From positions 13,938,275-14,002,274 of the forward strand of contig NC_134032.1 in NCBI RefSeq assembly GCF_964204645.1: a stretch of DNA of 64,000 bases. The letters run 5' to 3'. Both the position numbers and the translations under genes were made by a program. Source of the stretch: Tubulanus polymorphus (lineage: Eukaryota > Animalia > Nemertea). The notes below the pieces were generated by a model. That model was not told the origin of the DNA, did not search any database, and worked only from the letters and a program-made list of their open reading frames with translations. Below, in pieces: positions 22,500 through 62,642 of this stretch (the first letter of the stretch is position 1; every line of letters starts with the position of its first letter).

Positions 22500-23150
22500 T
22501 TCAACTGACTACTACGACCGAGTCACTGACTGACAAAGACTTACTGACAACTACTGAATATGATGACTTCGATGATTGAGTGACTACGACCGAGTCACTG
22601 ACTGACAAAGACTTACTGACTACTACTGATCATGACTACTGTGATTGAGTGACTGCTACAGAGTCACCAATACTATTACTATTAATGACAAAATGACTAC
22701 TACGAGTCACTGACTACAACTTAGTGACTACTATTAACCAAAAAATGACCACTACAACTGACTTATAAAGACTTACTGACTACTACTGATCATGACTGCT
22801 GTGATTGAGTGACTGCTACAGAGTCACCAATACTATTACTATTAATGACAAAATGACTACTACGAGTCACTGACTACAACTTAGTGACTACTATTAACCA
22901 AAAAATGACTACAAAAAATGACTACTACAACTGACTTATAAAGACTTACTGACTACTACTGATCATGACTACTGTGATTGAGTGACTGCTACAGAGTCAC
23001 CGATATTATTACTACTAGTAACAAAATGACTACTACGAGTCACTGACTACAACTTAGTGACTACTACTAACCAAAAAATGACTAGTATGACTGTGTAACT
23101 TTACTGAATGACTACACTACTACTGCTGATTAACTGACTACTATGACCGA
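22500..23150. repeat. actact/gactgact-rich compound tandem repeat just 3' of the stop codon
   Basis: About 160-180-bp units (anchor aaagacttactgac). Confidence 0.85.
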
Positions 23151-23273
23151 TGAAAAAAAACTGTTTCGTTGAACTGCTGGTTACCCGGATACAGGAAGCA
23201 GTTGAAACGTAAATGACCCAGTGAAGCAGTGAACAAACAAGCCTACCTCGTTACTGGATCATTTACGATTCAT

Positions 23274-23741
23274 CTACTCCCTGTACCCACGCCTAAATAG
23301 GACCGATTTTAGATCACGAAGAAGAGCCTTCGATCTATCCGAAGATAGAAGCTCCTCCCACGGTCCCACGGAACCGCGAGCCACCACCCGCACTTCGGCG
23401 CGGCATCGGTCGCTGGACAGAACTCTGTCCAGCGCCGAAACCGGGGCAGCGGCCAACGGCTCCACGGGGGCAGGAGGAACTCCTCTTACCTCCTCAACCT
23501 CCACGACCATCTCCTCTTCTACCGGTTCCGGCTCCGGCTCCGGCTCCGGGACCGGTTCAAACACCGGTTCCGGCTCCAGCTCCGGCTCCGGCACCGGCAC
23601 CGCCTCCACCACCTCCGGAACTGCCACGACGCCGATCTCCTCCCCTCTGCCACCGCGTCGCTCCCCCTCGGGAGGCGCCACACCACCGCGACGAACCGCC
23701 GGACGGCGTCGTCTTCGATGCCGAGCGGTGCGCGTGCCCGT
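23274..23741 (-). CDS. Terminal exon (36), Arg-rich then Pro/Glu-rich (PEPEPE)
   Basis: Acceptor ttttttgcag|ACGGGC in phase 0; open 155 codons to TAG (ORF 23274..23759); GC-rich against AT-rich flanks. Confidence 0.8.
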   Translation of the reverse strand, partial: TGTRTARHRRRRRPAVRRGGVAPPEGERRGGRGEEIGVVAVPEVVEAVPVPEPELEPEPVFEPVPEPEPEPEPVEEEMVVEVEEVRGVPPAPVEPLAAAPVSALDRVLSSDRCRAEVRVVARGSVGPWEELLSSDRSKALLRDLKSVLFRRGYRE

Positions 23742-26700
23742 CTGCAAAAAAGAAAACATTCATTTACTAAATGATCGGTTGAAAAGTGATTTTTTACAGA
23801 AAATTTTCGGATCAGTAACCGAGCTGAAATAATGTAACAATATTCTAAAGGGTTAGAAAATAAAGCGAAAAAAAAAATGACGATGGCTCGCTGAAAATGA
23901 AAGTATTATTAAAGAAAAGATATTATAAGTGATTCACAAAAACTGTTCGTGTGAGAGAAATTGACATTCGAAATCAAAACCGAGAGAAATATAAAAAAAA
24001 CATGAGATGATGCTTACCTCCCGTAACTCCCCCTCCCACAGCCGCCCGTCCACACGACGGGACCACCTCTGTGCAGCAGGGTGCGGCTGCCGGAGGGTCC
24101 GCTGCCTAGGGCGCCTATCCGGGGAGGCAGCAGCTGGAACGGGGTCTGCCAGCTGGTCATCCAAGACAGGACCAAGGTTCAAGTGAAAGAGGTCTATGGC
24201 CTCTTTCACGTCCTCCGGACCATCCTCCACCGTCTCAATTAATATTGGTTCCACTGTAAAATATAAAATAGAAAGAAATACATTAACAATCAGGAGAAAC
24301 AATTAATATATCAAGGGCGGATCCAGTCCCCCGCCTTTAATATCTTGAGGTGCCCTCAAGATATTTTAGGAATTTCTTTTTCCATTTTATAAAGAAATAT
24401 CAAGTATTCCCTCATGATGGCTATCGAATAGCCTCGGGCAACAAAATTTCAAAATTTTCTGGGGAGAAACACTTAAGACCCCTTTCATCCCTTCACGAGT
24501 GCTCATGTGCCCTTCAGTAAACCTTCCAAAAATCCTGGCTCAGCCCTTGTAGATTTACAGTGAACCCAGTGTAGCTAGTAATCTCATTAATACAAAATGG
24601 TTGACTTTCCACTTGAAGCGTGATTGATTGCCAATAATTTGTGACATCATCATGCAGCAGAATGTGGGATGCGGAAAGAAGACAATATCAGTCTCCATGA
24701 GTGACAATGATGGGCTGGTTGAGAGTTTAGGTTTGTCGGGACAGGGTTACTACAGTACAGCACAGAAGTAACTAAACATTTCATCATTGTATTGTTCAGT
24801 CACATGAACAAATAAATAGGTGTCATACCATCAGCGAACCATCACTTAACCATCAGTGAACCCCTGCCATAACCGCAAACCATGATTCATGATGATTTGA
24901 AAATAATTCTAAATGGTAGGCATGGAAACTTGTTAAAATTGATCTAGTTCATAAAATGCAGTCTATTTTCTCCGATTCAAATCAGTTCAAGAAGACTTTT
25001 TTGGCAATGCTTCAATAAACAGCGTAAAATGGATGCAAAAACGATGGTTTATTCAGACCGCGCGATTTCACTGGTCGTATTTAAACCAAATTTGATGAGG
25101 TATGTGTTTAAAACAATGAGCGACGTATGGTATATGGAGTATATTACTTAACTAATTACTTACTCACCAAATTACTCAATTAACCTTTTCTTCTCTGTAT
25201 ATATATACCCCTGTTTTTAGTCTCACACCTGACGATGATCTCTAGGGTGAGATCGAAACGTCGTGTCCTTATGTTTTAGATTGTTTCAATAAATAAATTC
25301 TCGATTTTAGAATTCTTTTAATTTTATATTTATTTTTTTGTAAATAAAGTTGGTTTTTATCTTATTAACCCTTTCAGTGCCGACTGATCAATACCCTATA
25401 GTGCTGGAGATAATTTGAAAATTTTGAAAAATTCCGCCCTAGTGTGTTGAATAACGGGAATAGCACTACAGTGCGTCTACACCACGGCGCGGTATATCGT
25501 TAGTTACATTTCTAGGCTGTACCGTCAATAAGACCCGGGGCTTGATGAGGCAGTGGCTGCGTTACTGTGGCAAGCGAGGATCAGCTCGTGGTTACTCCTC
25601 AGTTACCGTGCTTCAATTTCGTCGACACTTCCCGATTGAACTGTAGCCGACTCATCGCTTTATCAATACGCGAAAGTTGCTCGAACAAAAATTCATTTGA
25701 TTATATTTGAATTTTGTAAGCCAAAAAATCGAGTTCGAAAAATAAACTAATTTCATCGCGTATCAACCAGTGTATTTTTGCGCCATCTGGTGTACGCAGC
25801 CAGTACCTTATTCAATGTACATTGAGGATACTTATCTCAACACGAGCGGCGGGGGGGGGGGGGGGGGGGGGATGAAAAATGATGTGATCAGTGGAAAGAG
25901 AGAGGAGAGAGTATAAATGCAAAAAGTTGTACTTACATCGCGTCAAAAAATTAAGTAAATACCGCGGATCCGCGGCGATATTCCGCCTTATTTCTTCGAT
26001 GACTGTAAAATAAATAAATGAGAAAAATTGTTAGTATTTCATTAAATCATGGACGATCAATAGGAGTTTTACGACGTGGACAATACAGTCAAAGTCCGTT
26101 ATACCGCCGCCATACTCCATCAGGAGTGACATGATTTTCGGCATTTTAACGTGCTGGATCCAGTTCCACAAATGAGTTAACTCTGAACTCAGAATCTAGT
26201 TCTACATTTGCGAGAGTTAACACTGAACTCAGAATCTAGTTCTACATTTGCGAGAGTTAACACTGAACTCAGAATCTAGTTCTACATTTGCGAGAGTTAA
26301 CTCTGAACTCAGAATCTAGTTCTACATTTGCGAGAGTTTATTCTGAACTCAGGATCCAGTTCCACAGATGAGTTAGATTTAACTCTGAACACAGAATCCA
26401 GTGCTACAGTTACGAGTTAAAGTTAACTCTGAACTCGGGATCCAGGACCCAGTTCCACAGTTGTGATTTAGAGTTAACTAAATTAATCATCAGTTATCAA
26501 CAGTAAGGCGCTCAGTAACATCTTTCATATTTCTGTTCAAATCAGAGACAAATTCAGTATTTCTTGTCATAAAATGGTAACACATACCGAAAAATCAGTA
26601 ACAGTTTGGGCAGCTCTGCTAAAAATGTCTGGCTACAAACGGACATATCTAAAATAGGATCATCAATATGTGTAGACTTACCATTTTCCGTCGCATCGAC

Positions 26701-29700
26701 GGCGGCTGCGGCAGCTGCATTTTCTGCCTATAATATAATAACAATCATGATGTTAAGGTTTAAGAAAACAACAAAAAACTTTGTCAAAATTTATGCAGTT
26801 TCTAAAAGCGTTTCGATAACACGAATCGTAATTAGAGAGATAATGGGGCTAATTCCCTATATGAAATCAAAAGCTGAAAGAGAGCCTGCAAACAAGAGCA
26901 TTTCAAGAGCTCAACTAATGCAGCGCAAAGTTTCCAAACAAACCAAGAAATCACAATTTCAAAGTTTTTCTTGATTTCTTGTTATAGTACATTCGCCGTT
27001 TATGTATAGCAGTTCCGGTCCATTGGATAATCCTTTCATTATCGCTTTCATGAAATTTGAATAGTAGGGAACTGGCACGCCAGCTATCCCTTCAGATGGC
27101 ACCGCTTAGGTATGTGAGACAATCTAATGGGACAGAAAGTGAATTTCACAGACGTCGTCTGTGCGACAAGAAGTCATCAAATTAGAGCATCGATATTTTG
27201 TCGCGCATCTCTTATTGTATTAATAGTGAGCACTGGATCATATCATTACGGTTAAAAATACCCGACTATTTGATATCTCTAATTTGAGTAGTTTTCACCT
27301 GAATATATGACAACGCAAGGGCTCTAATAACTTACTCTTCGGCGTCTCAGCCGCGGCGATCGCCTCAGCGGCGGTATCTCGTCTCTCTGGAAAAAACAAA
27401 ACAATCAACATTGATTAAATCATCGAAACATTAGATGATTTCTTACTGATTGGAGAATTCGGTATCAGAATAGCTCGGTAGGACCAGAGAGATTCAGGGA
27501 TTCTATATGTGAATAGCTCGGTAGGACCAGAGAGATTCAGGGATTCTATATGTGAATAGCTCGGTAGGACCGGAAAGGTTCAGGGATTCTACATATGAAT
27601 AGCTCGGTAGGACCGGAAAGGTTCAGGGATTCTACATGTGAATAGCTCGGTAGGACCGGAAAGGTTCAGGGATTCTATATGTGAATAGCTCGGTAGGACC
27701 GGAAAGGTTCAGGGATTCTATATGTGAATAGCTCGGTAGGACCAGAGATTCAGGGATTCTATATGTCTTCCTGTTCATTGACGTGTCAGTAATGATCAAC
27801 ACATTCAGTGTATTTGATGCATTATAATTATTTTCACTTATAGTTCAAACTTACATCAGCTTGCGGCGGCGGCGGCGGCGGCGTCGCAGGTGTTTCAGTC
27901 TAAAAAGTAAAAAAACGATATTTCCATCGGTTATAAAAAGATGAAAATGATTCATTTCAACTTAACATAATAAAACTTGGTTCCACAGTTCAGGACCCAG
28001 TCCCACAGTTACAGAACCTGCCTCCGCAGTACTGTTCTGGACCCAGTTCCACAGTTCAGAGTTATGATCTACTAAAGAGTTACAGATGCTGGATCCTAGT
28101 TTTCCAGCCAATGATATTCAGTTAGTTCCGTGCGCTGGTCATCAAGCCGATTGTCATAAATTTCTAGATCTCTCCCTGTCCCGCCGCCCCAGAATTAGGT
28201 ATTTTTACTTTTTTTTGGTTTAGATTTTTTGGTGCCACAAGATCCAAAGCAGAAGAATTCTACACTATTTTAATTCTTTTTCCGATGCAGATTTTGAAAA
28301 CAATAAAATATCCTCATAATCATTGGTGAACCACAATGATAATAATCTACATGACTTAAAACAGGAAATAATGGTCAAGTCTTCATGAATAACCATGAAC
28401 TGTGGGTGCAGAGACGCGAAAATCACTTGAAAAGTGGTTCGAACGCTCGGACAACTGGAAACATTTAAAAATTTGTCAGTTATTACCATAGTTTATCATT
28501 GTTACAATGGAGGTTGTCACCTATGTTGAGGATTTACCGCTAGGGGCAACATTGAAACCCGGTCTATGAAATCGGGCCACGGTTGAGGATTTACCCCTAG
28601 GAGAAAATAATGTGGTCTATAAAACCCTGCCCAGATTATCGAACTTAAAATGATTTGACGCAAATCAAACTTACTTTAACCGGTCCGATGCGTGCCCGTT
28701 TAGGGCTAACGGGGTCCTATAAAATAAAAACAAGTTGAAATCAACATCCAGAATTTTCAAACATATTTCTGAAGGAAATCTCAATTTCATATTATCTTAA
28801 TAATCTTTGGTGAGCCACGAAAATGATAATCTACACAACTAAAAAATGGAAATGAATAATCATGAACTGCGGGTGCAGAAACGACAACACCACTTGCAAA
28901 AAGGGCTTCAACAAACTCTCCACAATCACAAATTCAGAGGCACGTACTACCATCGCGAAAATCTTGTGCCATTTTTTCCATTCCCAAAATAGATGTTCAA
29001 GCCATTTGGAAAGTGGTTTTTTTTCACATCGACAAACTCTCGTCGCAATCACAAATCATACTTGTCGTAAGCTTAAACTTTCACAAGATCCCGTCGGCAG
29101 GCGGACAGACGGAGAGACAGGCACACAGACGGAGAGACAGGCACACAGACGGAGAGACAGGCACACAGACGAACGGACTGTAAAATGATTTGATGAAATT
29201 CAAACTCACCGATGCCGGTACCTTGAGCTTCCTCTTCTATAAAATGAAAAAATCAACTTTAGTTTAACGACGTCAACAAAAATTCAGACATATTTCATCT
29301 GCAGTCGTTTGTGTTCAACTGTTAATTCAATAGAAATGTTCACAATATTTACCGGCACATTCACGCACGTGTGGAATTCATTTCTCTACATAAAAAGAAA
29401 AACAAGAGCTCAATTTAGCATTTATGAAAATCAGAATAAATTATCTCAAATCTCGCATTTTTTTAATAGCTTGGTTGACAAGGTAGACTATTGAAATATC
29501 ATTTCCATATCATTTAAAAAAAAAAGAACTCGCTCAGCGCGATAAACACAGTTTTTGAAGGAAGAGGGAACTATCGATTGGGCAATATACATATGTCCAA
29601 AACAATGATCCTTGGAAAGTTCGAATTCTGCACACAAATGTGATCAAAAAAGAATAAACGTGTGTTTTTCAATTTTTCCATCATTCAAGCCGGGATTCTC

Positions 29701-32700
29701 ATTCGGCGAAGGTGAAAACTTTTTTGCTCGTTTTCCACTGAATTTGTTCCACGGATGGGAGTAAAAAAAAATTCTATTTTTGTTTGACTTTTCTTCAAAT
29801 TTCGGGAGGCGGTTCCCGTAAACCAAGCTATTATAGAAAAAGCCTCATCTGGTGAACCATCAAAAATAGTTATTATTACGTTATAGGTTGTTACTAATGA
29901 TCGGATTTATGAGAACCACAACGGTATAGTGTACATTATGGAATAAAGTTCAAGTTTTTGTCAGTAGATGGCAGGCAGGTGGTATTTATAAAGTGACTGG
30001 GTGTCAACATGTGTAACTGAAATTGTCTATTGAAAACTTACGTCAATTTGCACAATACGCGCGATTTCCGATTCCTAGAAATGTAAAGAAAAAAAATTCT
30101 GAAATCAAGTTTTGAATAACTATACCACGGATGAAAGATTCCATGATCTAAATTCTTAGTTGACCCTCGCTTTAGAGACTATTTTGAGGATAATTGAACC
30201 GATGGATGCTGCGCGACATGATTTCAATATTCTACTAACTCGGTCTGAAGAACATTCACATCGATACAAAACTGTGACCGAGCCGCAACTTTTAAACATT
30301 CTTAGTTTCACTTAAAAACATTGCTTCACGCTATTATCAATACCAATTTTACGAATAATATGAACTCGGTAAGATGAATATTCGCATCGATACAAACTGT
30401 GACCGAGTGCGACTACTTTCAAACACTCTTTAGATAATACTGGATTCAGCTGCGATTAATTTAGGACCGAAGATACTATTGTACATAGCTTAATCAGTAG
30501 CGGATCCAAACTAGATTCCATTGTATTCCGGAATATAGTCGGAATAACATATTTTTTTTTAAAGTAACTCGATCCAACAGAATGTCCCAGATACAAGGAA
30601 ATTAGATCATATTTCAAAATTTTTAATGGTTAGGACCCCTAAACTGCGGCAGCTGCAGCGGTCAGTCAGGCAAAAAATATCTTTAAGGAATATAGCCAAA
30701 TTCACCAGTCCCCCACGGAACTGCCCCTAAGTAATGACATTTTAGAATTGAACCCATGATACCGTATAGCGGCTGCAAACAGATCGGTCACAATTACCAG
30801 TGTTTATGTTTTCGAACAACAAATAAGCTAGCAAAAACTAGGTGCCTTTAGCCTACGAGCAAAATTGTTGAGCAAAATTGTTCGTAGCTTTAGCCAAGTT
30901 TGACCTTGGTGGAGATATGCTATGGGATCTCTTAGAACATGGATAACCTAGGGCGAACTCTTTTATCAAATCGGAGAATCCGTTTGCCTCCAGTCGTACT
31001 CTTTTATTGGTCACGTGACTTGTTGGAGTCTCCGAAAACTCCTTTCTGTCGAGGTGGTGTGATTCGGATTTTTTGGTGCCAACCGAAGATTTCGGACGGA
31101 GACTTCGGAGGTCATAAAAGAGTACGCCCTTAGGGATATTTCAGCAGGAAAATCAATATCAGATTATAATTATCTGGTAAACTACGAAAATAATTATCTT
31201 TTACAACTTACGATAATGGTAGGAGCCTCGGGCTCCGGCGGCGGCGGCTCTGGGAAATCATCATTCTAGTAATCAAAATGAAATATCATGAAAAATTCTA
31301 GCTAACCCTAAAAGCAAGTATATATGGAGCCACCCATTAATGAAAGGGATGGCTCCAAATTCACTGAGAACGAGTAGGCGATCAAAAGGATATTTACCCA
31401 AAGGTCGTCGAATAAGTTGATGTCCTATAAAAAAGAATACAAAAAATTTATTACGATAAAGTATACTTATGTTTTTGGTAAATGACGCTTACTGATCACA
31501 AGTGACATATGGTCACGATAGTATCACAATTGCTTGCCGGTGAGGCTAGGCGTTCACCAGAGCCAAGTTTCATAGATGTTGGGAAAAAATAATACCAGCT
31601 GGGATCATTTCGAAATTTTTCAGTTATTACCAAGGTTTTCATTATGAAGTTATCACCTATGTTGAAGATTTACCTATAGGCAACCAACACGGCTGCCAAC
31701 CTCTGAAAAGTGCTATCGGTAACAAATTGTAATATGAAAGTAAATGTTCAAATCAATCAGTAATCAACAGTAAGACCCTCAGTTAGATCTTTCATACTTC
31801 TCATATGCATCGAACAAATCAAATCAGTATTTCTTGTCATAAAAGAGTAACAAATACCGAAAATCAGGAACAGTTGGCAGCTCTGGGTAACATTCATATC
31901 CGGTTTACAAAATCGGGCTCAGGTTGAAGAAATACCTCGAGGGTATTATTGATATACAGTCTATGAAACAGGGCTAAGGTTATCAATATTTAACATCGAT
32001 ATCGAAAATGATTTAATGAAATTGAAACTTACCTCCTCGCGCCGAATTTTCGGCGGGCTTACAGGTTGCTGTAAAATATTTTAAAAAAAGTTGAAATCAA
32101 CATTCAGATGTTGATACACATTTCTTTAGTAAATCTCAACTTTCAGATAGTCGTAATCTATAGTGAACCACAATGATAATAATCTACACGACTTAAAACA
32201 GGAAATAATCGTCAAGTCTTCATGAATAACCATGAACTGTGGGTGCAGAGACGTGAACATCACTTGGAAAGTGGTTCCACCGACGCTCGGACAATCGGAC
32301 TTTTTTCAATATTCAAAAACCAACATACAGAAACCAATGACCTTTAATGTCGCCACAATCATAGAACATGTCGAAAGCATAAAACTTACGACCACAAGTC
32401 AGCACAACAAGATCCTGTCTACAAGACAGACACAGACAGACACAGACAGACACAGACAGACACAGACAGACACAGACAGACCGAGGGTAGACCACTTTTT
32501 TCCCTGATTTTGTAGTATTAAGAATTTATAAATCCCCTGTGTTTTCCAGGATTTTGGTAAAAATCTATCAAATTCCCCAATCTTTCTGATTCAATGAGAT
32601 TGCCAGGTTTTCTAGGACATTAGCACCCTTGAATTGCTGAACAATGCTTATACCACTGGCGATTGTGAGATCCTATCTATGGACGAAAAGACAGATTGAA

Positions 32701-35700
32701 AGTAATTACAGGAGAACGATTCGATAGAATTGAAACTGACCTCGTCGACGGATCGGCGTCGCTTTCTGGTGACCTATAAAATAAACAAGAAACATTGATT
32801 TAGATTTAATCATTTTTCAAGTTCATGATCACGTGTAGTTCGAACATGGAAAACATTTCATGAGAGAAATTGAGTGGAGCCGATTTAAGACTGCGAGGAA
32901 AGATATCAGTAATGTCAGCGATGAGCGAATACTAAAAACATGGCCAAAACTTACTTCTTTTGTTGTTGTTACTGTTTGTGAACACTGATGCCATGAAAGA
33001 AAAAAAGAGAATTAATTTTAGTTTTGTTATTTTATGTTCAGTAGCACACGTAGGTATCAATATACGTAATAAATGAGTTCTAAGTGACGGATGCCTCGTT
33101 ATAGATATTGTTTTGATTCCGTATCGTTATTTAATAAAACGAACAGGAGAATTTTTATGACTTTGTTCCCGGTATGAAATACATTGGCTGTCAGATAGAA
33201 ATGAACACGACAGAAAATCCATGATACAAAAAAATGCTGACTTACTTCCTTCGGTGACGCTGTTGGTTTCTGTTGCAATAAAAGAAAGAAAATTCAGTAA
33301 GTTTTTTTTTAAATATTTCATATACAGCAGCAAACGTTAATAAACACAGTAGACATAAAAACTGGACAGGTTTATATAGATATCTGTATCTGAAAAATGA
33401 TTTTGATGTCATTAGCATAAATATCTTACATTAAGTTAAGTGCAATTCCTGAGTGCTAATGGATTAAAGTTGACGTTAAGACAGGATCATCTACGCGGGC
33501 ATACACGGGAAACGAATGACGCTTAATTATAAAATTGAAACTTACTCGTGCAGGAATGGCCGCTGCCGCAGCTGTTGCTGTTGGTGTTGGTTTCTATTGC
33601 AATAAAAGAAAGAAAATTCAGCAAGTTTTTTTTTATATTTCATATTCAGCAGCAAACGTTAAACACAGAAGACACAAAAACTGGGCAGGTTTAATATCTG
33701 TGTCTGGAAATCGATGAAAATCACAAAAAATAATTGCCCATAGGCCAAGAGGTTTACCACAGCCTTATGAAATGCTTATATCAGGTAACGAAATAGGGAT
33801 GTAAAGTGTAAGGTGCGAGTAGTTTCGGTCTCGGTTAGAGAAATGAACGTTATCGCGGACCCAAGACAGAGCCGCTAAACCGCGCCGTTCATCAGTCAGA
33901 ATAGGACCAATTCCATCGCATCTCAGCTGCAGCCTCGGTACGGGAATTCAGAGCGTCGTTACGAAATGCGAGTTAAAAACACCTACTTCCCACTTAACCC
34001 ATTAGCACTCAAGCCGCCCGTATCCGCCCTGCCTATTACTCCTCAAGCCGCCCGAATCCGCCCCGGTACTTTTTTCGTATGCTGCACAAAAGTGGGATTC
34101 GAACCCGATAGCTTATAACAATCTACACACCTAAGTCCTCGAAATATCAAACAGAAAATCGACATCCTCCTATTTCAATTTCTCAAGTATTTCGAGTTTG
34201 AACATGACATATCTGAGCGTTCACTTAAAATCAATGTAGCAGTATGTTTGGATGAATTTCGGGGGGGGGGGGGCCCAAAAGGACACAAGGATTTTGGTGG
34301 CCCATCTCCTCAAATCTTACATCATATGAAAGCCTTGACTATTTACTACAAAATAACACTAACTTGTAATGCATGGAAATAAACAGCCAATGAGCTATTC
34401 GGTATCGCGATAAACTTGGATTTTAATTTTAATTTTCTGAGGAGTAATCGACACTACATAGTGCAATTCCTGAGTGCTAATGGATTAAAGTTGATGTTAA
34501 GACAGGATCATCTACGAGGGAATACACGGGAAACGAATGACGCTTAATTATAAAATTGAAACTTACTCGTGCCGGAATGGCCGCTGCTGTTGGTTTCTGC
34601 TGCAATAAAAGAAAGAAAATTCAGTTTTGTTTTATATTTCATATTCAGCAGCAAACGTTAATAAACACAGTAGACATAAAAACTGGACAGGTTTATAGAT
34701 ATCTGTATATGAAAAATGATTTTGATGTCATTAGCATAAATATCTTACATTAAGTTAAGTGCAATTCCTGAGTGCTAATGGATTAAAGTTGATGTTAAGA
34801 AAGGATCATCTACGAGGGAATACACGGGAAACGAATGACGCTTAATTATAAAATTGAAACTTACTCGTGCAGGAATGGCTGCTGCTGCAGCTGTTGGTTT
34901 CTGCTGCAATAAAAGAAAGAAAATTCAGTTTTGTTTTAAATTTCATATTCAGCAGCAAACGTTAAACACAGTAGACATAAAAACTGGACAGGTTTATATA
35001 GATATCTGTATCTGAAAAATGATTTTGATGTCATTAGCATAAATTTCTTACATGAAGTTAAAATCAAACATGGCACATGGTAAATCATTTTGAAGGGAAT
35101 CGAACTCAGATTAAATTCCGTAACTTTTGACAAAATTCTGATGAAAAGCTCTTTAAGAATCGATTGTTATATTATTTGATGATCATTGGTTTACATATAT
35201 CTGTTGGTTAATATTATCAATGAACTTGTGGTACAGTCGCCAATCCCACGCGAAAAATGATTTGGACGCTTGATAATCAGACTTATTTAATATTCAACGC
35301 CCCCTGGTGAAAATATACAAAAACCGTTGACCTTGAAACTCGTCACTATCATAGAAAATGTCGCAAGTGAACAGATGGAGAGATGAACGGACGGACAAAA
35401 AAGTCCATGATACAGAAAACTTCAAACTTACAAATGCTGCTGCTGTTGTTGCTGCTGCTGCTGTTGCTTTCATCTGCCATAAAAGAAAAGAGAATTCATG
35501 AATTTCTTGTGTTATTTCGTATTCAGTTGCAAACATTAAACATCGATCATATCTTGATTAAAACAACAACAAAAAACATGTTTTTTATCTGTGTTTGGAA
35601 AAGCTCTGATATTATGTAACTTTGAAATTGATATTTCTGTATGTTTGTTTTACGGTTTAAAAGATATAAAGTCCATTAAACAGAAAAAATTCAAACTTAC

Positions 35701-38700
35701 TTCTAATGCTTTTTTTTTCCTTTCCCTCTGTAAAAGAAAAGAGAATTCATTTATTTAGTTTTGTTATTTCAGACTCAGTAACTGTGTGACCTAAATCCGC
35801 CTGTAATTATTCGATAGAATTTACTTACTTCCATTTTTCTCTTCTCTTTCAGAGTCTATAAAGTAAAAACGATTCAATTAAATTTTTTTTCTATTTTCAA
35901 GAGTGATGAGAGTAATCAACAATAGAAATTTCAGCGACCTTAAACCAGAAATTATTGTGTGATTGTTTGGTATCAGCTGAGCTGTTAAAATGAGCAGAAA
36001 CTAAAACTTAGCAAAGTGGCAACAACTGGAAGACAGGTAGAGAATGTTGCAGTCTTCGTAAAAAACGACAGAGTTTACTTAATTTGTTATCGACTTCGAA
36101 AGAATTAAGCTTAGCCGTCTTAAAGCGAAGTTTCACGGGAATCCATCGAGAAATACAGGGCAAACTTTGGTTTTTTCGTAGCTAGTCGACCAATGGTTGG
36201 AAATCACTGAACGCGCAATAGCTCAGTCGAAACATATTCCAGCCATCTTGGAATCATGAAGTCCAAACTACAGCGACCGTGCTCAGTCGATCATTTCTGA
36301 CTATAGTTATAACTGACATTCTGTTGCACTTAGTTCACAAATAGTCGACTAAAAACTGCGATAACCAAAGTTCGTCCCGGCTGTGACGCGCTAAAAAGAA
36401 ATTCAAGATGGCCGCCGATGACATCCTTCAATAGGGGTTAACGTGTGCCCTATATCGCACCGAGGATTGCAGGCTGGATGATGCTGGGACTGCACACACT
36501 GAGTAAGATTAGATGGCCCCCACAACCGAAGAAACATTAATATACTCTCATATTTTAGTTGTCATAATCAAGTATGGATATTATTAACACTATTATTCTT
36601 ACCTCCTGCGCGACGAGTCGGTCGCGTAGTTCGTGGGCGTACTCGTAGCAGTTGTCAACTGCTACTTTCGGCCCACGAACTACTACAATTGGGTGTACCC
36701 TCGGCGTATCTACGATCACTTGCTGTAAATAGAGAACAAAAGAATCTGTATGAGCATTTTAAATCAGTAGCAGTTTGAAAGTGATGAGAAATAAACGTCA
36801 TTCACTGAAAGCTCGTTATGTACAACAATGAATTTCAGTAATCTGTTCGTTTATAATCGATATGAAATTATTAAAATGTTTTATTTTGGACGGAATTCTC
36901 AGGTTTATAATAAAACTAACAAATAGTTAGATAAGTCGTTATATCCAAAGTCATTTTAACGTGAAAGTAATGAATTGAATACAAAATGTATAGAGCATTT
37001 TAACCCTTTGACTGTTTAATTTATGTAATTAAAGTGGCTCCCCCTAGGGTAAGCTGCACTTCCTTTGAAATCAATCTTTCTCACATTACCGGATATTTTC
37101 TTGTCAGCGTTTTCTGGAACGAGGCCCTGAGCGACGTCCCCAACTTTAACTCGAAAACTGTTTCGATTTCCTGAAATATAAATGAAAAATTTTACATCTC
37201 CATAAATATCAATTAGAGGAAAACTGAAAGAGGTGTTTATTGACACCTTGAATGACACATGAATTGCTTGTCAACGATTGATGATATATGAATTAATCGG
37301 GGTCCAATTCTGTATTTTCCTTTCATAGGAATGAAAGTTACGAAAGCAGTGTTGTCGTATGTCAGTTACATCTTTATTCTTCAAGTTCTCCGTGTTCCTG
37401 TTCCGTCCGATGAGTCGGGGTAGTCAATCAGTGTGACTACTAGCAGGATCAATAAATATATGTTGATTTTGAATATATCGATGATTGAATTGAACTGACC
37501 GGCAAAATCTCTAGTCTCCAGCCCCGATATATCAACGAGGTAATACCGGTACACAAATGTCTATTGTCAATAAGACATATATAAAATTTATCGAACAGAA
37601 AACATACAGAATGAAATATGTTATATTACAAAATGGATAAGCGAACATTCACAATTGTAATTATTTTGAAATGCTCCAATATTGACATCTTCACCCGTCA
37701 AAGGATTCGAACCCACTACGCTAAAGCTGTTCCCCGAACCCCTTGACCTCACGAGTCGTTGGAGTCGTTACTAGCCGACCAGAATCCGGTCGTACCAATC
37801 ACAGCGCTTGTAACAAACCGTCAGTAGACTTCTGTTGGTTTTCCCGTTTAATGGACCAATCAGCGAACGTTTTACCGAACAAGGAAGTATTTCGCAAATC
37901 GATATATGACGTCACACGCAACAGCGCCAGTAATGAAATCACGCTTCGTGAGGCCAGGGGGCTGGTGGAAGCGAGTTCGGGAGTGAAACCGGACCCCTGG
38001 CAAGCGAGGATGCAATATTGATGACGTAGCACACATTGACTCACACAAAACCATAGGCGTCCCCGAGGGGGGTGCAGGGGTAGCGGACCCTCTTCAAGAT
38101 AGCTAACTTCTCAAGTTAACATGTAATCAATGTTCAAGATTTTTCTTGCCAATTTGACTTAAGTCCTTTAACTCTAAATGATTCATTTAGAGCCTGGAAA
38201 ACGTCTCTAAAGCGTCAAATTTAAAAATTGTTTTTGGGGGAGGCCCCCCAAACACCAGACATTGTGCTTGGATGCTTGATTGATGCTTATTCGAACCCCT
38301 TATGCAAATTCCTGGGGATGCCTATGAGAACCTGTTAAATAACGCACAGGTATGAATGTATATGAACATCTTTGTAATTCCGGTTTTTACGGCATCAAAA
38401 AAGTTGCGATATTTGCTTCGCTATTAACACTCCCGTTAAATTATACAGTCGAATTACTTAAGCTCATCTCTTACAGTTTTCACTCTATGGAGCTCGAAAG
38501 TTTCTATTGATTTTCCTACTTTTATGTTGACAATGATGGGCACTCTGAGGGTTTTTTTTTTATCATCTCTTACAGTTTTCACTCTATGGAGCTCGAAAGT
38601 TTCTATTGATTTTCCTACTTTTATGTTAACAATGATGGGCACTCTGAGGGTTTTTTTTTTTTATCAAATCACCCGTGAGTGCTGAAAGAGTTATGCCCTT

Positions 38701-41700
38701 GGATGATATATACCGGGAGGAGGGTTGATACGACGTGGCTCCTTAACTCATTTCCACCCAAACACGTACTCGTATGTTCGTTATCTCCCATCACATTCCT
38801 GTCAAAACCGTACTGGCAAAATGGTTGGCTTGTTTCTTAACTCAAAACCGTACTGATACGGTTGGCTTGTTTCTTAACTCTAAACTGTACCGATACGGTT
38901 GGCTTGATTCTTAACTCAAAACCGTACCGATACGGTTGGCTTGTTTCTTAACTCAAAACCGTACTGATACGGTTGGCTCGTTTCTTAACTCAAAACCGTA
39001 ATGATACGGTTGGCTTGATTCTTAACTCTAACGATAGATGGCGAATTCATCGCACAACACCAGTTAGTTTAATGCCTTTTACTACTAAACAAACTCATCA
39101 GTTGTTCTATACAGTGTGCGAGTGACATCATCTATTGAAATGGGGGCTGAACACGCATATATTCTGCAAAATACTCCCTCTGCACTGGTTATCGCTACAG
39201 ATTTTATCACTCTTAGACGAAATGCCGCTTATTTTACATGAAAATGCAAGACTAGATCAAAGATACAAAACAAATTTGATGAGAAGATATCTCTTCTAGT
39301 TTTTGTTTTATGAATCTCTGAAAAACACGGAAATCCTGGCAAAACGCAGCATTTCCTAAAAAAAATAGGCGTGGCAGGAAAAGAGTTACGAATTTTTTTC
39401 ATTTATATTCCCGCTTTTTTTTCTCATATACCCTAATTATTCATTCGCCTTAAGCCCGCCGCACCCGGCATAACATTTGTTTCGCCAAAACAGAAAACAC
39501 ACTTTTCAGAACACGTTTTGCCCACAAACAATAAAATGTTCAACGGACACGACATATTGCTGTTCGGCGTTTTGTGTTTTGCCTTCCCCGCACACGGCAT
39601 AACAAACAACAGGCTTAAACCTCATGTACTAACACAGTACAAATTATTTTCATCTCAAGTCTCAACATATTACAATTGATAACCAGCCAACAGAACGGAT
39701 ACATCTAAACTTACTTCGATGTCTGGGGACGCCAACTTGGACCTCGTTCCAGTGTGATGCTGTAAAAGAATAAAATTCATTAATACAAAGCCTAGGAATT
39801 GGTAAATCGACCTTCGAAAAAATCATCTTTTTTTGCAGAAAATCTACCAGGCAAAAGAAAAAAGCGAGTCGGAATCTATTCAATCGTTGCGCTTATGAAA
39901 ATCAGCACCAGTTTATGGGCATAAAAATGTGCGCCAAGAATTGAATTTGATGACCAATACAAATAAACCAAAAATAGACAGGTTTGATATCTGTAACCGA
40001 ATTGGATTTAGAGCCGCTTTTTTCAGGTCAAAAACGATAAGTTACGAAGGGAATCGAACTCTGATTAAATTCTGTAACTTTGATGATAATTCTGATGAAA
40101 AACTCATTAGAATCGGTTGTTTCAAGGTAACAGAAGAATTTATACTTACTGCCTTTGCTGCTGTTTGTTTACGCTGATGACATGAAAGAAAAAAAGAGAA
40201 TTCATTTTAGTTTTGTTATTTCACGTTCACACGTTAAATACAGTAAATATAAATACATCAATAAAAGAGATACATAAAATATATGCACATATATCCGTGA
40301 GCAAATGCTTCCAGATTTTACTGTGTGTGCTAATATTATATTAAAAAAACTTGATTTTAAAATAATTCTAAGTGACGGGAATTTATTTCATTGAAAGCAG
40401 GATTATTTTCATGACTTTGTTCCCGGTATGAAATATACGATGAAAATCACAAACAAATCATCGTCTGTCAGAAAGAAATAAACACCACAGAAATTCCATG
40501 ATACAAAAAACTTCTCACTTACCTCTGGTGCTGGTGCTGTTGTCGTCGTCGCTGAATTCTGTCGCAATAAAAAAAAGAAGAGAATTCATGAATTTCTTGC
40601 ATTATTTCATATTCACTAGCAAACATTAAACACAGGAGATCATATTATAATTAAAACAAAAGACAAGTTTTACATCTGTATTTGGAAAAACCCTGATATT
40701 TCTGTATTCGTTTGTTTGAGGGTTTTATTTAAACAATATAAAGTCCATTAAACAGAAAAATTCAAACTTACTGTATTTGTCGCTGTTGGTCTGTTCTGTT
40801 GCAATAAAAGAAAAGAGAATTCATTAATTTCTTGCATTAAAACTCTGATCTCTGTAACTTTGATATTTCTGTATTCATTTGTTTTACAGTTTGATTCAAA
40901 CGATATAGAGTCCATGAAACAGAAAAATTCAAACTTCTGTTGCTGCTGCTGCTGCTGCTGCTGCAGCAAACTGTCGCGATGAAAGTATAGTAATTAATTG
41001 CGTTGTTATTTCATATTGAGTAGCACACATTTAACAGAGATCATGATTAAAACGAATACCAGACAGGTTTAATATCTGGAAAAAGATTTCATCAGAGTAA
41101 ACTTGTTACAATGAGAGAAAACAAAAAACACCACGCGATAAATCAGTTTGATAATTCCTTTCATCGGGATATTTGCACTTTAAAAATGACAATTGTAATT
41201 ATTATCATTACTATTATCGTTATTACTACGAGTTTGATGATAATTATGAACTATACGTGCAAATATAAGCGTATGTGTAAGTGATCGCGCGCACAAATTG
41301 AAGACGAAATCAGTTGCAACTCGCTTAAAGAGTTATGAAGTTTCAATGACTCTCAGCGATAATGGTAGATATCATATTCCACCGAGGAGATTAATAGAAA
41401 ACTTACATTCACAAAATGTATTTCCGCTTCTACTGTAATCTAGAAAAGAGAATTAACATTCATATCTATAAAAATCATTCATTAAATGATCAATGAATCT
41501 AAGCGCCAGTTTTATGGAGACCAATGTTTACTTTAATAAATCTGGGTTAACTTGATTAAAAGTGAATTCAGTTAACTGAGCACGGGTTAAACATAATATC
41601 AGTCTAACCGGCTTCAGAGGACCAGGTTAAACAAAACAGGTTTATATAAAATGATATCATGAAATTGAAACTTACTGGCGGCGGAATTTCCTCCGGGACT

Positions 41701-42655
41701 TCTGGCTGTTAGAAAAGAACAATAACATTCACATTCAGGTCAAAATCGATAAGTTACGAAGGGTATCGAACTCCGATTAAATTCTGTAACTTTGATGATA
41801 ATTCTGACGAAAAACTCAAAAGAATCGGTTGTTTCAAGGTAACAGAAGAATTTATACTTACTGCCTTTGCTGCTGTTTGTTTACGCTGATGACATGAAAG
41901 AAAAAAAGAGAATTCATTTTAATTTTGTTATTTCACGTTCACACGTTAAATACAGTAAATATAAATACATCAATAAAAGAGATACATAAAATATATGCAC
42001 ATATATCCGTGAGCAAATGTTTCCAGATTTTACTGTGTGCTAATGTTATATAAAAAAAACTTGATTATAAAATAATTCTTAGTGACGGGAATTTATTTCA
42101 TTGAAAGCAGGATTATTTTCATGACTTTGTTCCTGGTATGAAATATACGATGAAAATCACAAACAAATCATCGTCTGTCAGAAAGAAATAAACACGACTA
42201 GAAATTCCATGATACAGAAAACTTCTCACTTACTTCTGGTGCAGCTGTTGTTGTTGTCGCTGAATTCTGTCGCAATAAAAAAAAAAGAGAATTCATGAAT
42301 TTCTTGCATTATTTCATATTCAGTAGCAAACATTAAACACAGGAGATCATATTATAATTAAAACAAAAGACAAGTTTTATATCTGTATTTGGAAAAACTC
42401 TGATATTTCTGTATTCGTTTGTTTTAGGGTTTTATTTAAACAATATAAAGTCCATTAAACAGAAAAATTCAAACTTACTGTATTCGTCGCTGTTGGTCTG
42501 TTCTGTTGCAATAAAAGAAAAGAGAATTCATTAATTTCTTGCATTAAAACTCTGATCTTTCTGTAACTTAGATATTTCTGTATTCGTTTGTTTTACAGTT
42601 TGATTCAAACGATATAGAGTCCATGAAACAGAAAAATTCAAACTTCTGTTGTCGT

Positions 42656-42694
<39 letters not shown>

Positions 42695-44024
42695 AGCAGC
42701 AGCAAACTGTCGCGATGAAAGAAAAGTAATTAATTGCGTTGTTATTTCATATTGAGTAGCACACATTTTTAATCATGATTAAAATTGAGATCATGATTAA
42801 AACGAATACCAGACAGGTTTAGGTTTAATATCTGGAAAAAGATTTCATCATAGTAAACTTGTTACAATGAGAGAAAACAAAAAACACCACGCGATAAATC
42901 AGTTTGATAATTCCTTTCATCGGGATATTTGCACTTTAAAAATGACAATTGTAATTATTATCATTACTATTATCGTTATTACTACGAGTTTGATGATAAT
43001 TATGAACTACACGCGCAAATATAAGCGTATGTGTAAGTGATCGCGCACACAAACTGAAGACGAAATCAGTTACAACTTGCTCAAAGAGTTATGAAGTTTC
43101 AATGACTCTCAGCGAAAATGGTTGATATCATATTCCACCGAGGAGATTAATAGAAAACTTACAAAATGAATTTCCGCTTCTACTGTTATCTAGAAAAGAG
43201 AATTAACATTCATATCTATAAAAATCATTCATTAAATGATCAATGAATCTAAGCGCCAGTTTTATGGAGACCCATGTTTACTTTAATAAAATCTGGGTTA
43301 ACTTGATTAAAAGTGAATTCAGTTAACTGAGCACGGGTTAAACATAATATCAGTCTAACCGGCTTCAGATGACCAGCTTAAACAAAACAGGTTTACATAA
43401 AATGATATCATAAAATCTAAACTTACTGGTGGCGGAATTTCCTCCGGGACTTCTGGCTGTTAGAAAAGAACAATAACATTCACGTTCATTAGAATTATTT
43501 GAAAAATAAGCATCTGGGGGCGGTTGCACGTCAATCGAGTCTTAAGTCCGAAAGTGGTCTTAAATCATAAGACTGGTCTTAAGTTGTTAGATTGGCTATA
43601 GAACCAAGTTGGTCTTAGACTGATCTTAAGTCTAAGCCCTGACTATGGAACCGGCCCCAGAAAATGTTTGTTTTGAATATTGATTGTAACATCAAATGAT
43701 AACCGGTCCCGGGTTCAAATCCACATTTAATTAAATATTCAATCTGTATCCTGGATGGTTAGTGAGGTGGAGATATCTTAACGGAGGAGTGGACGGTATC
43801 TTTGATGGGTTGGTATGAACGCCAACACCAGGGGGAGTGGGGGCGGGGTATTTAAATCTAGCTCCGATATATCAATGAAATACTGCGCACTATCTCAAAA
43901 ATATCGATGACGTAGTGCACATCTACTCAGGTAAGTATATTAGGTTTATCAATGTATATACAGACATATTATTGGAACAAAAAAAAAAATGAATACTTAC
44001 TATCTGCTTTCGTTTTGGAGCCAT
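23274..44024 (-). CDS. 36-exon microexon-rich gene; about 670-aa low-complexity, putatively nuclear protein with a central KH-like domain
   Basis: Each coding exon has a pyrimidine tract+AG acceptor and GT donor (last exon ends at the stop), and the joined frame has no stop. Exons in transcript order: 44001-44024 MAPKRKQI; 43427-43456 PEVPEEIPPP; 43163-43189 ITVEAEIHF; 42479-42502 NRPTATNT; 42234-42266 NSATTTTAAPE; 41862-41885 RKQTAAKA; 41676-41705; 41407-41439; 40772-40795; 40523-40558; 40150-40173; 39715-39759 HHTGTRSKLASPDIE; 37090-37170; 36603-36722; 35829-35855 TLKEKRKME; 35701-35727 RERKKKALE; 35432-35473; 34865-34900; 34567-34596; 33546-33593; 33246-33269 KPTASPKE; 32955-32984; 32741-32773 VTRKRRRSVDE; 32033-32068 QPVSPPKIRREE; 31398-31424 DINLFDDLW; 31212-31265; 30042-30074 ESEIARIVQID; 29353-29385; 29210-29236 KRKLKVPAS; 28675-28716 DPVSPKRARIGPVK; 27855-27899; 27336-27386 RDEIPPLRRSPRLRRRR; 26682-26727 (phase 0-1); 25937-26002 (1-1); 24018-24253 (1-0); 23274-23741 (terminal). 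Confidence 0.8.
24018..24253 (-). CDS. Penultimate exon (35) of the microexon gene
   Basis: tattttacag|TGGAACC...TTACGGGAG|gtaagc; 236 nt, phase 1-0; inside ORF 23934..24302. Confidence 0.8.
25225..25266 (+). ncRNA. Minimal type I hammerhead ribozyme (Penelope-like element pLTR type)
   Basis: ACAC-CTGACGA-T-GATCTC-tagggt-GAGATC-GAAA-CGTC-GTGT. It has both core boxes, a 6-bp stem II, stem I ACAC/GTGT, a palindromic ACGT stem III and a GTC site. A TATATA tract lies upstream and AATAAA downstream. Confidence 0.75.
25369..25505. mobile_element. Truncated copy of the piggyBac-type MITE
   Basis: TTAA-CCCTTTCAGTGC followed by the reverse complement of ~46105-46241. Confidence 0.75.
26174..26375. 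repeat. 40-bp minisatellite x5
   Basis: Unit gagttaacactgaactcagaatctagttctacatttgcga. Confidence 0.9.
27468..27765. repeat. 43-bp minisatellite x7
   Basis: Unit gaatagctcggtaggaccggaaaggttcagggattctatatgt; the paralogous intron near 18200-18235 has only one partial unit. Confidence 0.9.
30950..31130. mobile_element. MITE (Harbinger/Tourist-like ends)
   Basis: TIR agggcg(a/t)actctttta ... taaaagagtacgccct. Confidence 0.55.
36158..36378. mobile_element. MITE
   Basis: Imperfect TIR gggcaaactttggtt ... aaccaaagttcgtccc. Confidence 0.5.
36603..37170 (-). CDS. Exons 13-14 (81+120 nt): KH-like domain without GxxG loop
   Basis: EIETVFELKLGTSLRASFQKTLTRKYP|QVIVDTPRVHPIVVVRGPKVAVDNCYEYAHELRDRLVAQE has a strand-helix-strand-strand-GP-helix pattern like type I KH folds (judged by eye). 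Paralogous copies differ mainly by synonymous or conservative changes. Confidence 0.65.
38052..38326. mobile_element. MITE with CATAGGC ends
   Basis: TIR cataggcgtcccc ... ggggatgcctatg; near-TSD aaaac/agaac. Confidence 0.6.
38803..39030. repeat. 37-bp minisatellite x6 with internal hairpin
   Basis: Unit caaaaccgtactgatacggttggcttgtttcttaact (AACCGTA/TACGGTT). Confidence 0.9.
40022..43483. repeat. Intragenic tandem duplication (~1.7 kb x2) carrying five microexons each
   Basis: 40022-41733 and 41734-43483 are near-identical including introns. Confidence 0.9.
43513..43660. mobile_element. MITE
   Basis: TIR ctgggggcggtt ... aaccggccccag. Confidence 0.55.
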
Positions 44025-44538
44025 ATTTCTAGAAAACAAAATAGAGACATCATAAACATTTGAGCGACGACACTTATCATCATTTGAAAATTGGCATATC
44101 GATTGTAAACAAATCCGCCAGATGACAGATCTGTAATCAGTCAGTGCTATGGAGGGTAGCCCTTGGGTTTTAATAGAAACAATATCAGAGACAACACACA
44201 TTAACATCTGGCCCCAGTGTTACCGCACTATATCAGTATGCATGGTTACTGCAGTTACATGGTTAAAAAATTTCTAAGTATTTCATGGGTGATTTTTCAA
44301 TTTTCCAAAGCGGAACTGAACCGATATCATCATGCTTCAGTTAACATTTTAGCGGTGAATGGTTGATAAAGATGATTCTCAAGGGAATTCGCTGACGAAA
44401 GTTGCACTTGGCAAATACACAAAATATAAATGAATTACCCAAATATTTCCTTGATTTTAGGAAAATTTCCGAAATTTATTTTTGGAAATAATTCCAAACT
44501 AGGAGTTATCATTTCAAAATTCCAAAGTTTTTCCCAAT

Positions 44539-48559: not shown

Positions 48560-49370
48560 AAAATGGCCACCGGGCTGAAGAGGTATGAGGTAGGGAGAGG
48601 GATCGCCGCCGACGGGGCTTTGTTTCTTCAGTTTTCTTCTGCCGTTCGTTCGACCATCTCATTTTTTCAACCAGTCGCTGCTGTGATGATATTCTCCTGC
48701 AGAAATTTGAGATCTCAAAAAGATCGGCTTCAAAAACATCGGCGGCGATCAGGATTGAGGAGCGGGATGGGTGCGGAAAGTGGCGCCATTTCAGACGACA
48801 GAATATCGAGTTAAAACATCGTCTGAAATATCAGTTTACCTCAATAGATGATCGTCAAAAACTATTTCTGCGCCGTCCAAACGATCTCTTCTGTGATATT
48901 GGACGTAAAATCTACCGCAAAACGATCTGATTTAACGGATGTAAAGAGATTTAAATCGAAAAAATCGCCATCACGTTTACTTACATCGCTCGATTTAGCA
49001 TGAATGATAATGCGCGCAACGGGCGAGCCAATCACCGTGACGGAAACAATAGGATCCAATCAACGGAACGGATACTATCGGATGCCGGACCACGTGGTGT
49101 GTTTGAATCGGCGGCATTCGGATACGGATTCTATAACCGAACCGTCGAAATGATATATCATTATCAATTTCAATTGATGTATCGAAATATCAATTCGACT
49201 ATCGATAGAAATAGAAATGATTCTATCGTAGATCTTTTAATATCAGTATCGGATTTTTTTTAGATTTTACCGACGCCCGACGACCAAACAACTCACATCA
49301 TCCTCGATTGCCAGGGGCCGGATGAAACGTTGGACGCGGACCGCGTATCGGCCATCGGCACTATCTAGGC
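48560..49370 (-). promoter_or_regulatory. CpG-rich candidate promoter and 5'UTR exons of the microexon gene
   Basis: Local CpG enrichment; CCAATCA at 49028 and 49056; minus-strand donor GAG|gtaaac at 48840 and acceptor ttctgcag at 48697. Confidence 0.35.
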
Positions 49371-59170: not shown

Positions 59171-59323
59171 CCACCTGGACTTGGTCATTTTATCAATAAC
59201 TACAGAGACAGAATTTATCAAAAATTTGTCATTTATATTTTCAGGAAATCGAATCATAATTCGAATTAAAGGGGGGCATCAATTAGGGCCATGTTCCAAC
59301 GTACACTGAGACGTAAATTTCAG

Positions 59324-62300: not shown

Positions 62301-62642
62301 TGACATTACTGATATCTTTCCTCGCAGTCTTAAATCGGCTCCACTCAATTTCTCTCATGAAATGTTTTCCATGTTCGAACTACACGTGATCATGAACTTG
62401 AAAAATGATTAAATCTAAATGTTGCTCGTTTATTTTATAGGTCACCAGAAAGCGACAACGATCCGTCGATGAGGTCAGTTTGAATTCGTGTAGATTATTA
62501 TCATTGTGGTTCAATATAGATTACGACTATCTGAAAGTTGAGATTTACTAAAGAAATGTGTATCAAAATTCTGAATGTTGATTTCAACTTTTTTAAAAAT
62601 ATTTTACAGCAACCTGTAAGCCCGAAAATTCGGCGAGACGAG
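59324..62642 (+). CDS. Inverted paralogous chain of 11 phase-0 exons in shuffled order (partial paralog or pseudogene)
   Basis: Exons 59324-59404, 59772-59891, 60098-60178, 60444-60476, 61154-61186, 61318-61359, 61630-61668, 61943-61969, 62231-62263, 62441-62473, 62610-62642. All are AG/GT-bounded, stop-free and multiples of 3. No start or terminal exon found. Confidence 0.5.

Follow-up and report, generated by a model that had tools for sequence, protein, structure and literature searches.

A gene of short symmetric exons on the minus strand

The DNA analyzed here (the window) is a stretch of 64,000 nucleotides (nt) from the nemertean Tubulanus polymorphus, C8:13,938,275-14,002,274 of a 268-Mb assembly (GCF_964204645.1, contig NC_134032.1). 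Between 22.6 and 44.4 kb of the window, very short open segments follow one another on the minus strand; a long pyrimidine tract with CAG or TAG stands before each of them, and GTAAGT or a close variant comes after it. Exon boundaries were fixed by script after this strand had been read, and the rebuilt model runs from an ATG at 44024 to a TAG at 23276-23274. It has 38 exons, 37 introns with near-consensus splice sites and a coding sequence (CDS) of 2121 nt, which amounts to 706 codons with zero internal stops. Our results confirm that this locus is a real, unannotated protein-coding animal gene. Exons 2-34, 33 in succession, all have lengths that are multiples of 3, are in phase 0-0, are open in frame, measure 24-120 nt and are bounded by AG/GT sites. 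Thirty-one of these symmetric exons are of 24-63 nt (30 of at most 54 nt and one poly-Ala exon of 63 nt) and the other two are of 81 and 120 nt. The symmetric run is followed by exons of 46, 66 and 236 nt (phases 0>1, 1>1 and 1>0) and then by a terminal exon of 468 nt. The exons are as follows, with positions given in the window.

44001-44028, minus strand: exon 1; acceptor AG at 44030-44029, 4-nt leader, ATG at 44024, 8 codons (MAPKRKQI) and a GTAAGT donor; identical in 7 copies
41862-43456, minus strand: cassette block 1, exons 2-7 (43456-43427, 43189-43163, 42706-42644 [poly-Ala, weak donor], 42502-42479, 42266-42234, 41885-41862); phase 0-0, 24-63 nt
40150-41705, minus strand: cassette block 2, exons 8-13 (41705-41676, 41439-41407, 40970-40935 [poly-Ala], 40795-40772, 40558-40523, 40173-40150); tandem duplicate of block 1
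39715-39759, minus strand: exon 14, 45 nt
36603-37170, minus strand: exons 15 (37170-37090, 81 nt) and 16 (36722-36603, 120 nt), the sole mid-sized symmetric exons
35432-35855, minus strand: exons 17-19 (35855-35829, 35727-35701, 35473-35432)
33546-34903, minus strand: exons 20-22 (34903-34865, 34599-34567, 33593-33546), variable-number cassette of the K-P-T...I-P-A-R type
32033-33269, minus strand: exons 23-26 (33269-33246, 32984-32955, 32773-32741 [GTCAGT donor], 32068-32033)
29210-31424, minus strand: exons 27-31, motif exons (31424-31398, 31265-31212, 30074-30042, 29385-29353, 29236-29210)
27336-28716, minus strand: exons 32-34 (28716-28675, 27899-27855, 27386-27336), end of the symmetric run, with basic clusters
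24018-26727, minus strand: exons 35-37 (26727-26682, 46 nt, phase 0>1; 26002-25937, 66 nt, 1>1; 24253-24018, 236 nt, 1>0)
23274-23741, minus strand: terminal exon 38, 155 codons and TAG

A first-pass annotation of this DNA had proposed a 36-exon gene with 31 symmetric exons, 29 of them microexons. That model equals ours without the poly-Ala exons 4 and 10; its phase-0, stop-free symmetric run with canonical splice sites is recovered as exons 2-34, and its MAPKRK start and its late trio of phase-keeping exons with a terminal exon recur as exon 1 and exons 35-38. The two poly-Ala exons (42706-42644 and 40970-40935) have a GTTTGA donor in place of GTAAGT and, judged from sister introns, have lost an ancestral GTAAGT donor. 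An exon of this type is deleted in one paralogue and has GC at its donor in another. These exons may be optional or dead, and the frame is intact either way. Several introns hold tandem repeats (43 bp x7 at 27468-27766, 40 bp x6.4 at 26174-26436, 37 bp x6 at 38802-39028 and 99 bp x2 at 38464-38660), and a homopolymer of 23 G (read as C on the gene strand) lies in intron 36 at ~25850-25872.

A scan that ignored both frame and length rules out a chance origin of this exon chain. The scan looked on both strands for a pyrimidine tract with a YAG acceptor and took the nearest GTRAGT donor; between 23.2 and 44.1 kb, it found 34 strong acceptor-donor pairs on the minus strand versus 1 on the plus strand. 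Multiples of 3 accounted for 28 of the 34 minus-strand pairs and for 24 of the 26 pairs shorter than 70 nt, where one-third would be expected by chance (P ~5e-10, by our arithmetic); of the two exceptions, one is the ATG exon, which includes a 4-nt leader.

A recently amplified family

The genome was searched by six-frame matches. Exon 37 has 63 matches, with ~11 at 97-100% identity on C8, C9 and C11, several fragments and ~40 at 48-54% identity. Exon 16 has 13 matches: 11 at 93-100% identity and 2 diverged copies inside the window. Nine of the 11 near-identical copies of exon 16 are paired with a copy of exon 37 on the same strand, 11-15 kb away. By these matches, the gene is one of ~10 near-identical, recently amplified copies on three chromosome-scale contigs; some copies are in tandem ~80 kb apart and most lie in the first 3 Mb of their contigs. 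Seven paralogues were compared, with every exon type mapped on each, and six of these are full length. The focal gene and these six have intact frames of 706-813 codons, with 38-47 exons, no stop, a common 8-residue start and a common stop, the focal gene being the shortest. Among 311 exon copies, all exons of symmetric type are multiples of 3 and AG/GT sites are used everywhere but at one GC donor, which belongs to a poly-Ala exon. Identity between copies is 97-98% and extends through introns and several kb of flanks, with exons and introns alike 2-3% apart.

Two further contigs, C3 (0.42-1.33 Mb) and C6 (0.65-1.75 Mb), carry ~40 copies of a segment that matches the final 60 residues of exon 37 at 48-54% identity. 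These copies have a spacing of ~33 kb and open frames of ~126 codons, and no exon 16 was found there. The C3 and C6 arrays are probably a distant tandem sister family.

Duplication of frame-neutral modules

Although the exons between them differ, the 45-nt starts of 13 introns belong to one sequence family and the 45-nt ends of 10 introns to another. These families show that much of the array was, as far as can be read from intron ends, built by duplicating a module in which a microexon is flanked by the end of one intron and the start of the next. Most of the coding sequence would then stem from repeated tandem duplication of this module and, as each module is a multiple of 3 in phase 0, its gain, loss or duplication by unequal recombination would leave the frame unbroken. 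Copies can therefore differ by whole cassettes. The 6-exon block is present as two tandem copies in the focal gene (exons 2-7 and 8-13) and as three in all six full-length paralogues, exons of the K-P-T...I-P-A-R type number 2-6 per paralogue, one copy has an extra N-R-Q-T-A-T-N-T exon and one copy has lost one of its poly-Ala exons. Because of these differences, combinatorial variation is present in the DNA of the paralogues, both by whole exon cassettes and by codon-repeat length.

Two classes of exon can be recognized in this comparison. Motif exons, comprising types 2, 3, 5, 7, 14-18, 27-31 and 34, are invariant or nearly so; exons 27, 28 and 30 are identical in 8 of 8 copies, and exons 29 and 31 each differ in one copy. 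A second class, with Ala/Thr runs (types 4, 6, 19, 20, 23 and 24), is hypervariable, with 13 variants among 19 copies of type 4, 10 among 20 of type 6 and 16 among 24 of type 20. In the product, short invariant motif exons, including basic clusters that resemble nuclear localization signals (NLS), would alternate with hypervariable Ala/Thr spacer exons. DNA from other individuals has clustered changes and an in-frame 3-nt insertion in exons 24 (32955-32984) and 26 (32033-32068) that lead to a paralogue-type peptide, which reflects either cross-laid reads from paralogues or gene conversion or polymorphism between copies.

The predicted product

The model protein has 706 residues, or 673 without the poly-Ala exons. 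Its composition (15% Ala, 12% Pro, 11% Glu and 10% Arg) includes 62% of disorder-promoting types, and its charge is balanced, with 108 K+R versus 104 D+E. Basic residues form four runs of 4-5, the motif K(K/R)x(K/R) occurs twice and (S/T)Px(K/R) three times. In hydropathy windows, the N-terminus is charged and reaches a maximum 8-residue hydropathy of 1.1 within the first 30 residues, while the sole hydrophobic window of the model is the optional poly-Ala exon. The first-pass annotation had described a protein with NLS-like motifs and no signal peptide, and both features are borne out, by the several basic clusters and by the hydropathy windows. The predicted product is mostly disordered and would not be secreted; it is most likely nuclear and possibly associated with chromatin.

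Exons 15 and 16 encode a 67-residue segment that looks foldable; an AlphaFold model of one intron-less copy of these exons has a mean predicted local distance difference test (pLDDT) score of 48, too low to be of use, and a "KH domain" label for the segment finds no support in Pfam or the Protein Data Bank (PDB). Exon 34 encodes 17 residues in which R-R-S-P-R-L is followed by four Arg, and which may resemble the nucleosome-binding core of HMGN proteins, R-R-S-A-R-L-S-A (HMG14/17 domain).

Selection on the frame

The ratio of nonsynonymous to synonymous changes (pN/pS) is 0.21-0.38 between the focal gene and each paralogue over exons 27-38 and 0.20 for the single-copy microexons 14-18 and 25-34 taken together. 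A codon-position test, in which each variable alignment column is counted once and which is independent of the tree, gave 15/7/30 variable columns at positions 1/2/3 for all single-copy exons tested (P = 4e-4), 12/6/27 for exons 14-34 (P = 4e-4) and 8/2/18 for non-CpG columns (P = 5e-4). None of 46 splice-dinucleotide columns is variable, versus 19% of intron columns (gaps included). Exonic indels are all multiples of 3, compared with 10 of 69 short intronic indels. Taken together, pN/pS, the codon-position bias, the invariant splice dinucleotides and the indels show that the predicted frame is translated now or was until very recently. The exons are under purifying, not diversifying, selection. 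CpG dinucleotides occupy 21% of exon columns versus 5% of columns in the 80-nt intron flanks and vary 3- to 17-fold as often as non-CpG columns, and synonymous sites are inflated by CpG decay. This pattern suggests germline CpG methylation and decay in the exons of the family, which would account for a synonymous divergence (8%) above that of introns (2.4%).

A quite different explanation is that the locus is a young, non-functional amplified unit, with the array carried along in segmental duplications and its frames intact merely through youth. Such a unit would share its high identity with introns and several kb of flanks, as is found, and would sit among decayed and scrambled fragments of itself, which occur on both sides of the gene within the window; the lack of a homologue in the libraries searched and of reads at the locus in a single possible RNA run (maybe from another population or species) would also fit. 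However, the third-position excess and second-position deficit at non-CpG sites and a pN/pS well below 1 are unexpected for neutral DNA, as is the contrast between splice-site and intron columns, and seven stop-free frames have been kept whereas neighboring fragments of similar age have stops and frameshifts. Hence, we think it very improbable that the unit is non-functional.

Our results are best explained, and with good probability, by a real unannotated gene of an amplified family, assembled from module-duplicated microexons and encoding a disordered, probably nuclear orphan protein. Several observations weigh against this explanation. Intact frames are by themselves weak evidence because the copies are only 2-3% apart, and at this divergence they partly reflect youth; moreover, comparisons among paralogues lack independence, and the copies have probably exchanged sequence by gene conversion. 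The indel test is weakened by the location of most exonic indels in triplet or hexamer repeats, where slippage occurs in threes anyway. Constraint is moderate, since non-CpG variability in exons (3.9%) is not below that of intron flanks (2.5-3.3%). The nuclear localization is read from simple motifs only. Three sequencing runs that contain the locus, each sharing about half of its sequence words, prove over 31205-37200 to be genomic DNA of other individuals, with even, colinear coverage of exons and introns and 2-3% difference, and one possible RNA run (2015) has no reads at the locus, although it may derive from another population or species and is thus not evidence of silence. Homology was searched exon by exon. 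A Pfam family scan (minimum 20 residues) of exons of at least 20 residues found no domain, the only match being to a low-complexity PARP repeat far below the cut-off; phmmer with exon 38 against 1.84 billion representative proteins found no relatives, with two matches to P/E repeats at E above 1e-4; a word-indexed protein search with exon 37 gave no match, and searches by exons gave no match in the PDB and no usable match in the ESM Atlas. By these searches, the predicted product is an orphan with no homologue in the libraries covered.

How the exons may be spliced

Exons 2-37 are followed by 36 introns, of which 32 begin with GT(A/G)AG (28 with GTAAG), one with GTAAT, one with GTCAG and two with GTTTG; all have long pyrimidine tracts and their lengths are 101-2544 nt. 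Near-consensus sites and short introns favor constitutive, intron-defined splicing, so inclusion of most exons would be constitutive. We infer that the gene is transcribed today.

Indirect evidence of splicing comes from three diverged copies of exons 15 and 16, identified by sequence comparison.

57308-58922, plus strand: three diverged intron-less copies of exons 15+16 (~57308-57483, ~58032-58207 and ~58744-58922)

In these copies, the 367-nt intron 15 is absent exactly at codon 27/28 and the upstream acceptor is retained; two of the three have a 1-nt frameshift. A fourth copy, at 59324 on the plus strand, has the intron. The classical explanation for precise intron loss is that a spliced mRNA was reverse-transcribed and recombined with the genome. 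Because the loss is precise and falls at the predicted junction in three copies, these sequences provide indirect evidence, as a genomic fossil, that junction 15/16 was spliced as predicted in the germ line.

It is also possible that the symmetric microexons are skipped in many combinations, as in the micro-exon genes (MEGs) of schistosomes, to give a repertoire of isoforms from each gene copy. The first-pass annotation had noted that any subset of these exons could be dropped in frame, which is arithmetically true as exons 2-34 are all in phase 0-0. The weak GTTTGA donor of the poly-Ala exons is kept in nearly all copies, as would be expected of optional exons, and the 80-nt intron flanks are no more variable than the exons. 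There is also scope for small-scale variation: one Gln could be gained or lost at exons 20 (34903/34900) and 21 (34599/34596), where the acceptors are tandem CAGCAG, and a 6-nt duplication has given exon 9 a pair of in-frame donors (41413/41407) separated by 6 nt. However, near-consensus donors, long pyrimidine tracts and short introns favor constitutive inclusion. Most microexon peptides are invariant in 8 copies, with a pN/pS of 0.2, which indicates that the microexons are included often enough for selection to act. In addition, MEG proteins are secreted and fast-evolving (PMC5825161), and the present protein is neither. Combinatorial splicing of this kind is therefore an unlikely account of the gene.

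Also unlikely is the proposal that an intracellular, probably nuclear disordered protein is diversified at two levels, by germline shuffling of cassettes among ~10 copies, which is shown by the paralogues, and by alternative splicing, which is putative. If true, such a system would yield a large repertoire of proteins that differ in the set and spacing of short linear motifs, and would extend MEG-like systems for the first time beyond parasitic flatworms and beyond secreted proteins.

Comparison with known architectures

MEGs of schistosomes are defined by symmetric exons of 6-36 bp that make up ~80% of the coding region, and their products are secreted and fast-evolving (PMC5825161). The present gene shares with them long runs of short symmetric exons, an orphan low-complexity product and a multi-copy family that grows by duplication (PMC5825161). 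MEGs are expressed in parasite glands, are documented to skip exons and encode products with a signal peptide or membrane anchor, whereas the gene described here has no signal peptide, is under purifying selection and belongs to a free-living worm of another phylum. Exons of at most 36 nt (n = 22) make up 31% of its CDS, those of at most 54 nt 48% and all 33 symmetric exons 60%. Exon-by-exon searches found no significant sequence relationship to MEG families, with two low-complexity matches only. Membership of the MEGs is therefore rejected, given 31% rather than ~80% of the CDS in exons of at most 36 nt, no secretion signal and no homology. The earlier description of the gene as "MEG-like" holds for its architecture of frame-neutral cassettes but not for its microexon share, its localization, its ancestry or its mode of selection.

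A second likeness is with the PEVK array of titin (TTN), which is also intracellular and disordered, with P/E/V-rich peptides that are each encoded by a small symmetric exon; there too, blocks of exons are duplicated with their introns and skipping keeps the frame (see also PMC11578113). The PEVK array, however, is only one part of titin, a giant sarcomeric protein that has Ig and Fn3 domains, and it consists of exons of ~75-100 nt, while in the present gene microexons form most of a ~700-residue protein that has no recognizable domain, has basic clusters and is encoded by ~10 gene copies. Schistosome MEGs and the titin PEVK array are the closest in form, and the gene is a variant of a known architecture, not a MEG.

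Other candidates were examined and rejected. A titin-type PEVK array as such is excluded by the finding of no Pfam domain on exons of at least 20 residues and of no other long frames in the gene, and a collagen-type array of 54-bp exons by the low Gly content (20 of 706 residues) and the lack of triplet periodicity. No Rfam family at gathering score and no tRNA was found in 22-50 kb, which argues against a host gene for snoRNAs or other small RNAs.

The present analysis adds selection tests, the two classes of exon, the status of the poly-Ala exons, the intron-loss fossil and a candidate first exon. If the gene is expressed, it would be an unusually clean natural example of a gene assembled and remodeled from frame-neutral exon modules. 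Each microexon would travel with intron ends that bear its splice sites, enabling unequal recombination to add, remove or duplicate peptides of 8-20 residues in frame, and ten young copies record many such gains and losses. With >30 consecutive exons of 24-54 nt, the gene would also be a demanding test for microexon recognition. Annotation pipelines probably overlook such genes; the large protein collections searched contained no product of this family.

Gene ends and neighboring copies

In all copies, an acceptor lies 4 nt before the ATG, which implies that the ATG exon is preceded by at least one other. Within 6 kb upstream, this strand has a single GTAAGT donor, whose intron starts at 48984; all 7 full-length copies keep this donor and its flank, 3.2-5.0 kb before the ATG exon. 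When the candidate exon that ends there is joined to exon 1, an in-frame ATG is found 7 codons further upstream. This segment is a candidate first exon with its promoter, as judged from its position and motifs. Downstream, AATAAA is absent from the first 250 nt after the stop codon, and a satellite-like array at 22600-23200, with units rich in TAGTAGTCA, starts ~100 nt past the stop codon. The features that surround the gene are as follows.

48985-49150, minus strand: candidate first exon, non-coding or short coding and promoter-like, with two inverted CCAAT boxes (ATTGG) ~30 nt apart, CACGTG and a GTAAGT donor
59324-62642, plus strand: inverted, rearranged partial duplicate with exon types 15, 16, 15, 25, 26, 20-24, 25 and 26, each with introns
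14200-18640, plus strand: scrambled mosaic of exon types 32 and 34-38, convergent with the gene, with internal stops and truncated exons

The stretch at 56900-59200 on the plus strand holds repeated units that, in one frame, read like the N-terminal tail of histone H2A and that are interleaved with the intron-less copies of exons 15 and 16. Focal exon 14 has ~65-70% nucleotide similarity to the start of these units, in a different frame.

These neighbors bear on a further proposal, by analogy with ampliconic genes, that the family is a germline or chromatin gene in genetic conflict, amplified for dosage and with arginine-rich motifs that bind chromatin. Testis-expressed ampliconic genes are a model for such dosage-driven amplification. 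The proposal, which is compatible with our preferred reading of a real gene for a disordered nuclear protein, would be in keeping with ~10 near-identical copies, some in tandem, and ~40 distant relatives of exon 37. It would also fit the arginine runs, the R-R-S-x-R-L motif of exon 34 and the S-P-x-K/R sites, the fragments next door that we take to resemble an H2A tail, and the paired CCAAT boxes in the candidate promoter. However, the likenesses to germline and chromatin proteins are all of a general kind and have no domain match, and the protein is as acidic as it is basic. We consider this role doubtful.

A check for mobile elements found no transposon domain in the long frames elsewhere in the window. 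The inverted duplicate at 59324-62642 has introns that are nearly identical to those of the focal gene, and every piece of it is in phase 0-0. An exon 37-like fragment in opposite orientation lies ~7 kb beyond every paralogue, and the mosaic at 14200-18640 therefore belongs to the duplicated unit. Within this mosaic is a tandem array of exon 37 copies, each with only ~30 nt of upstream intron.

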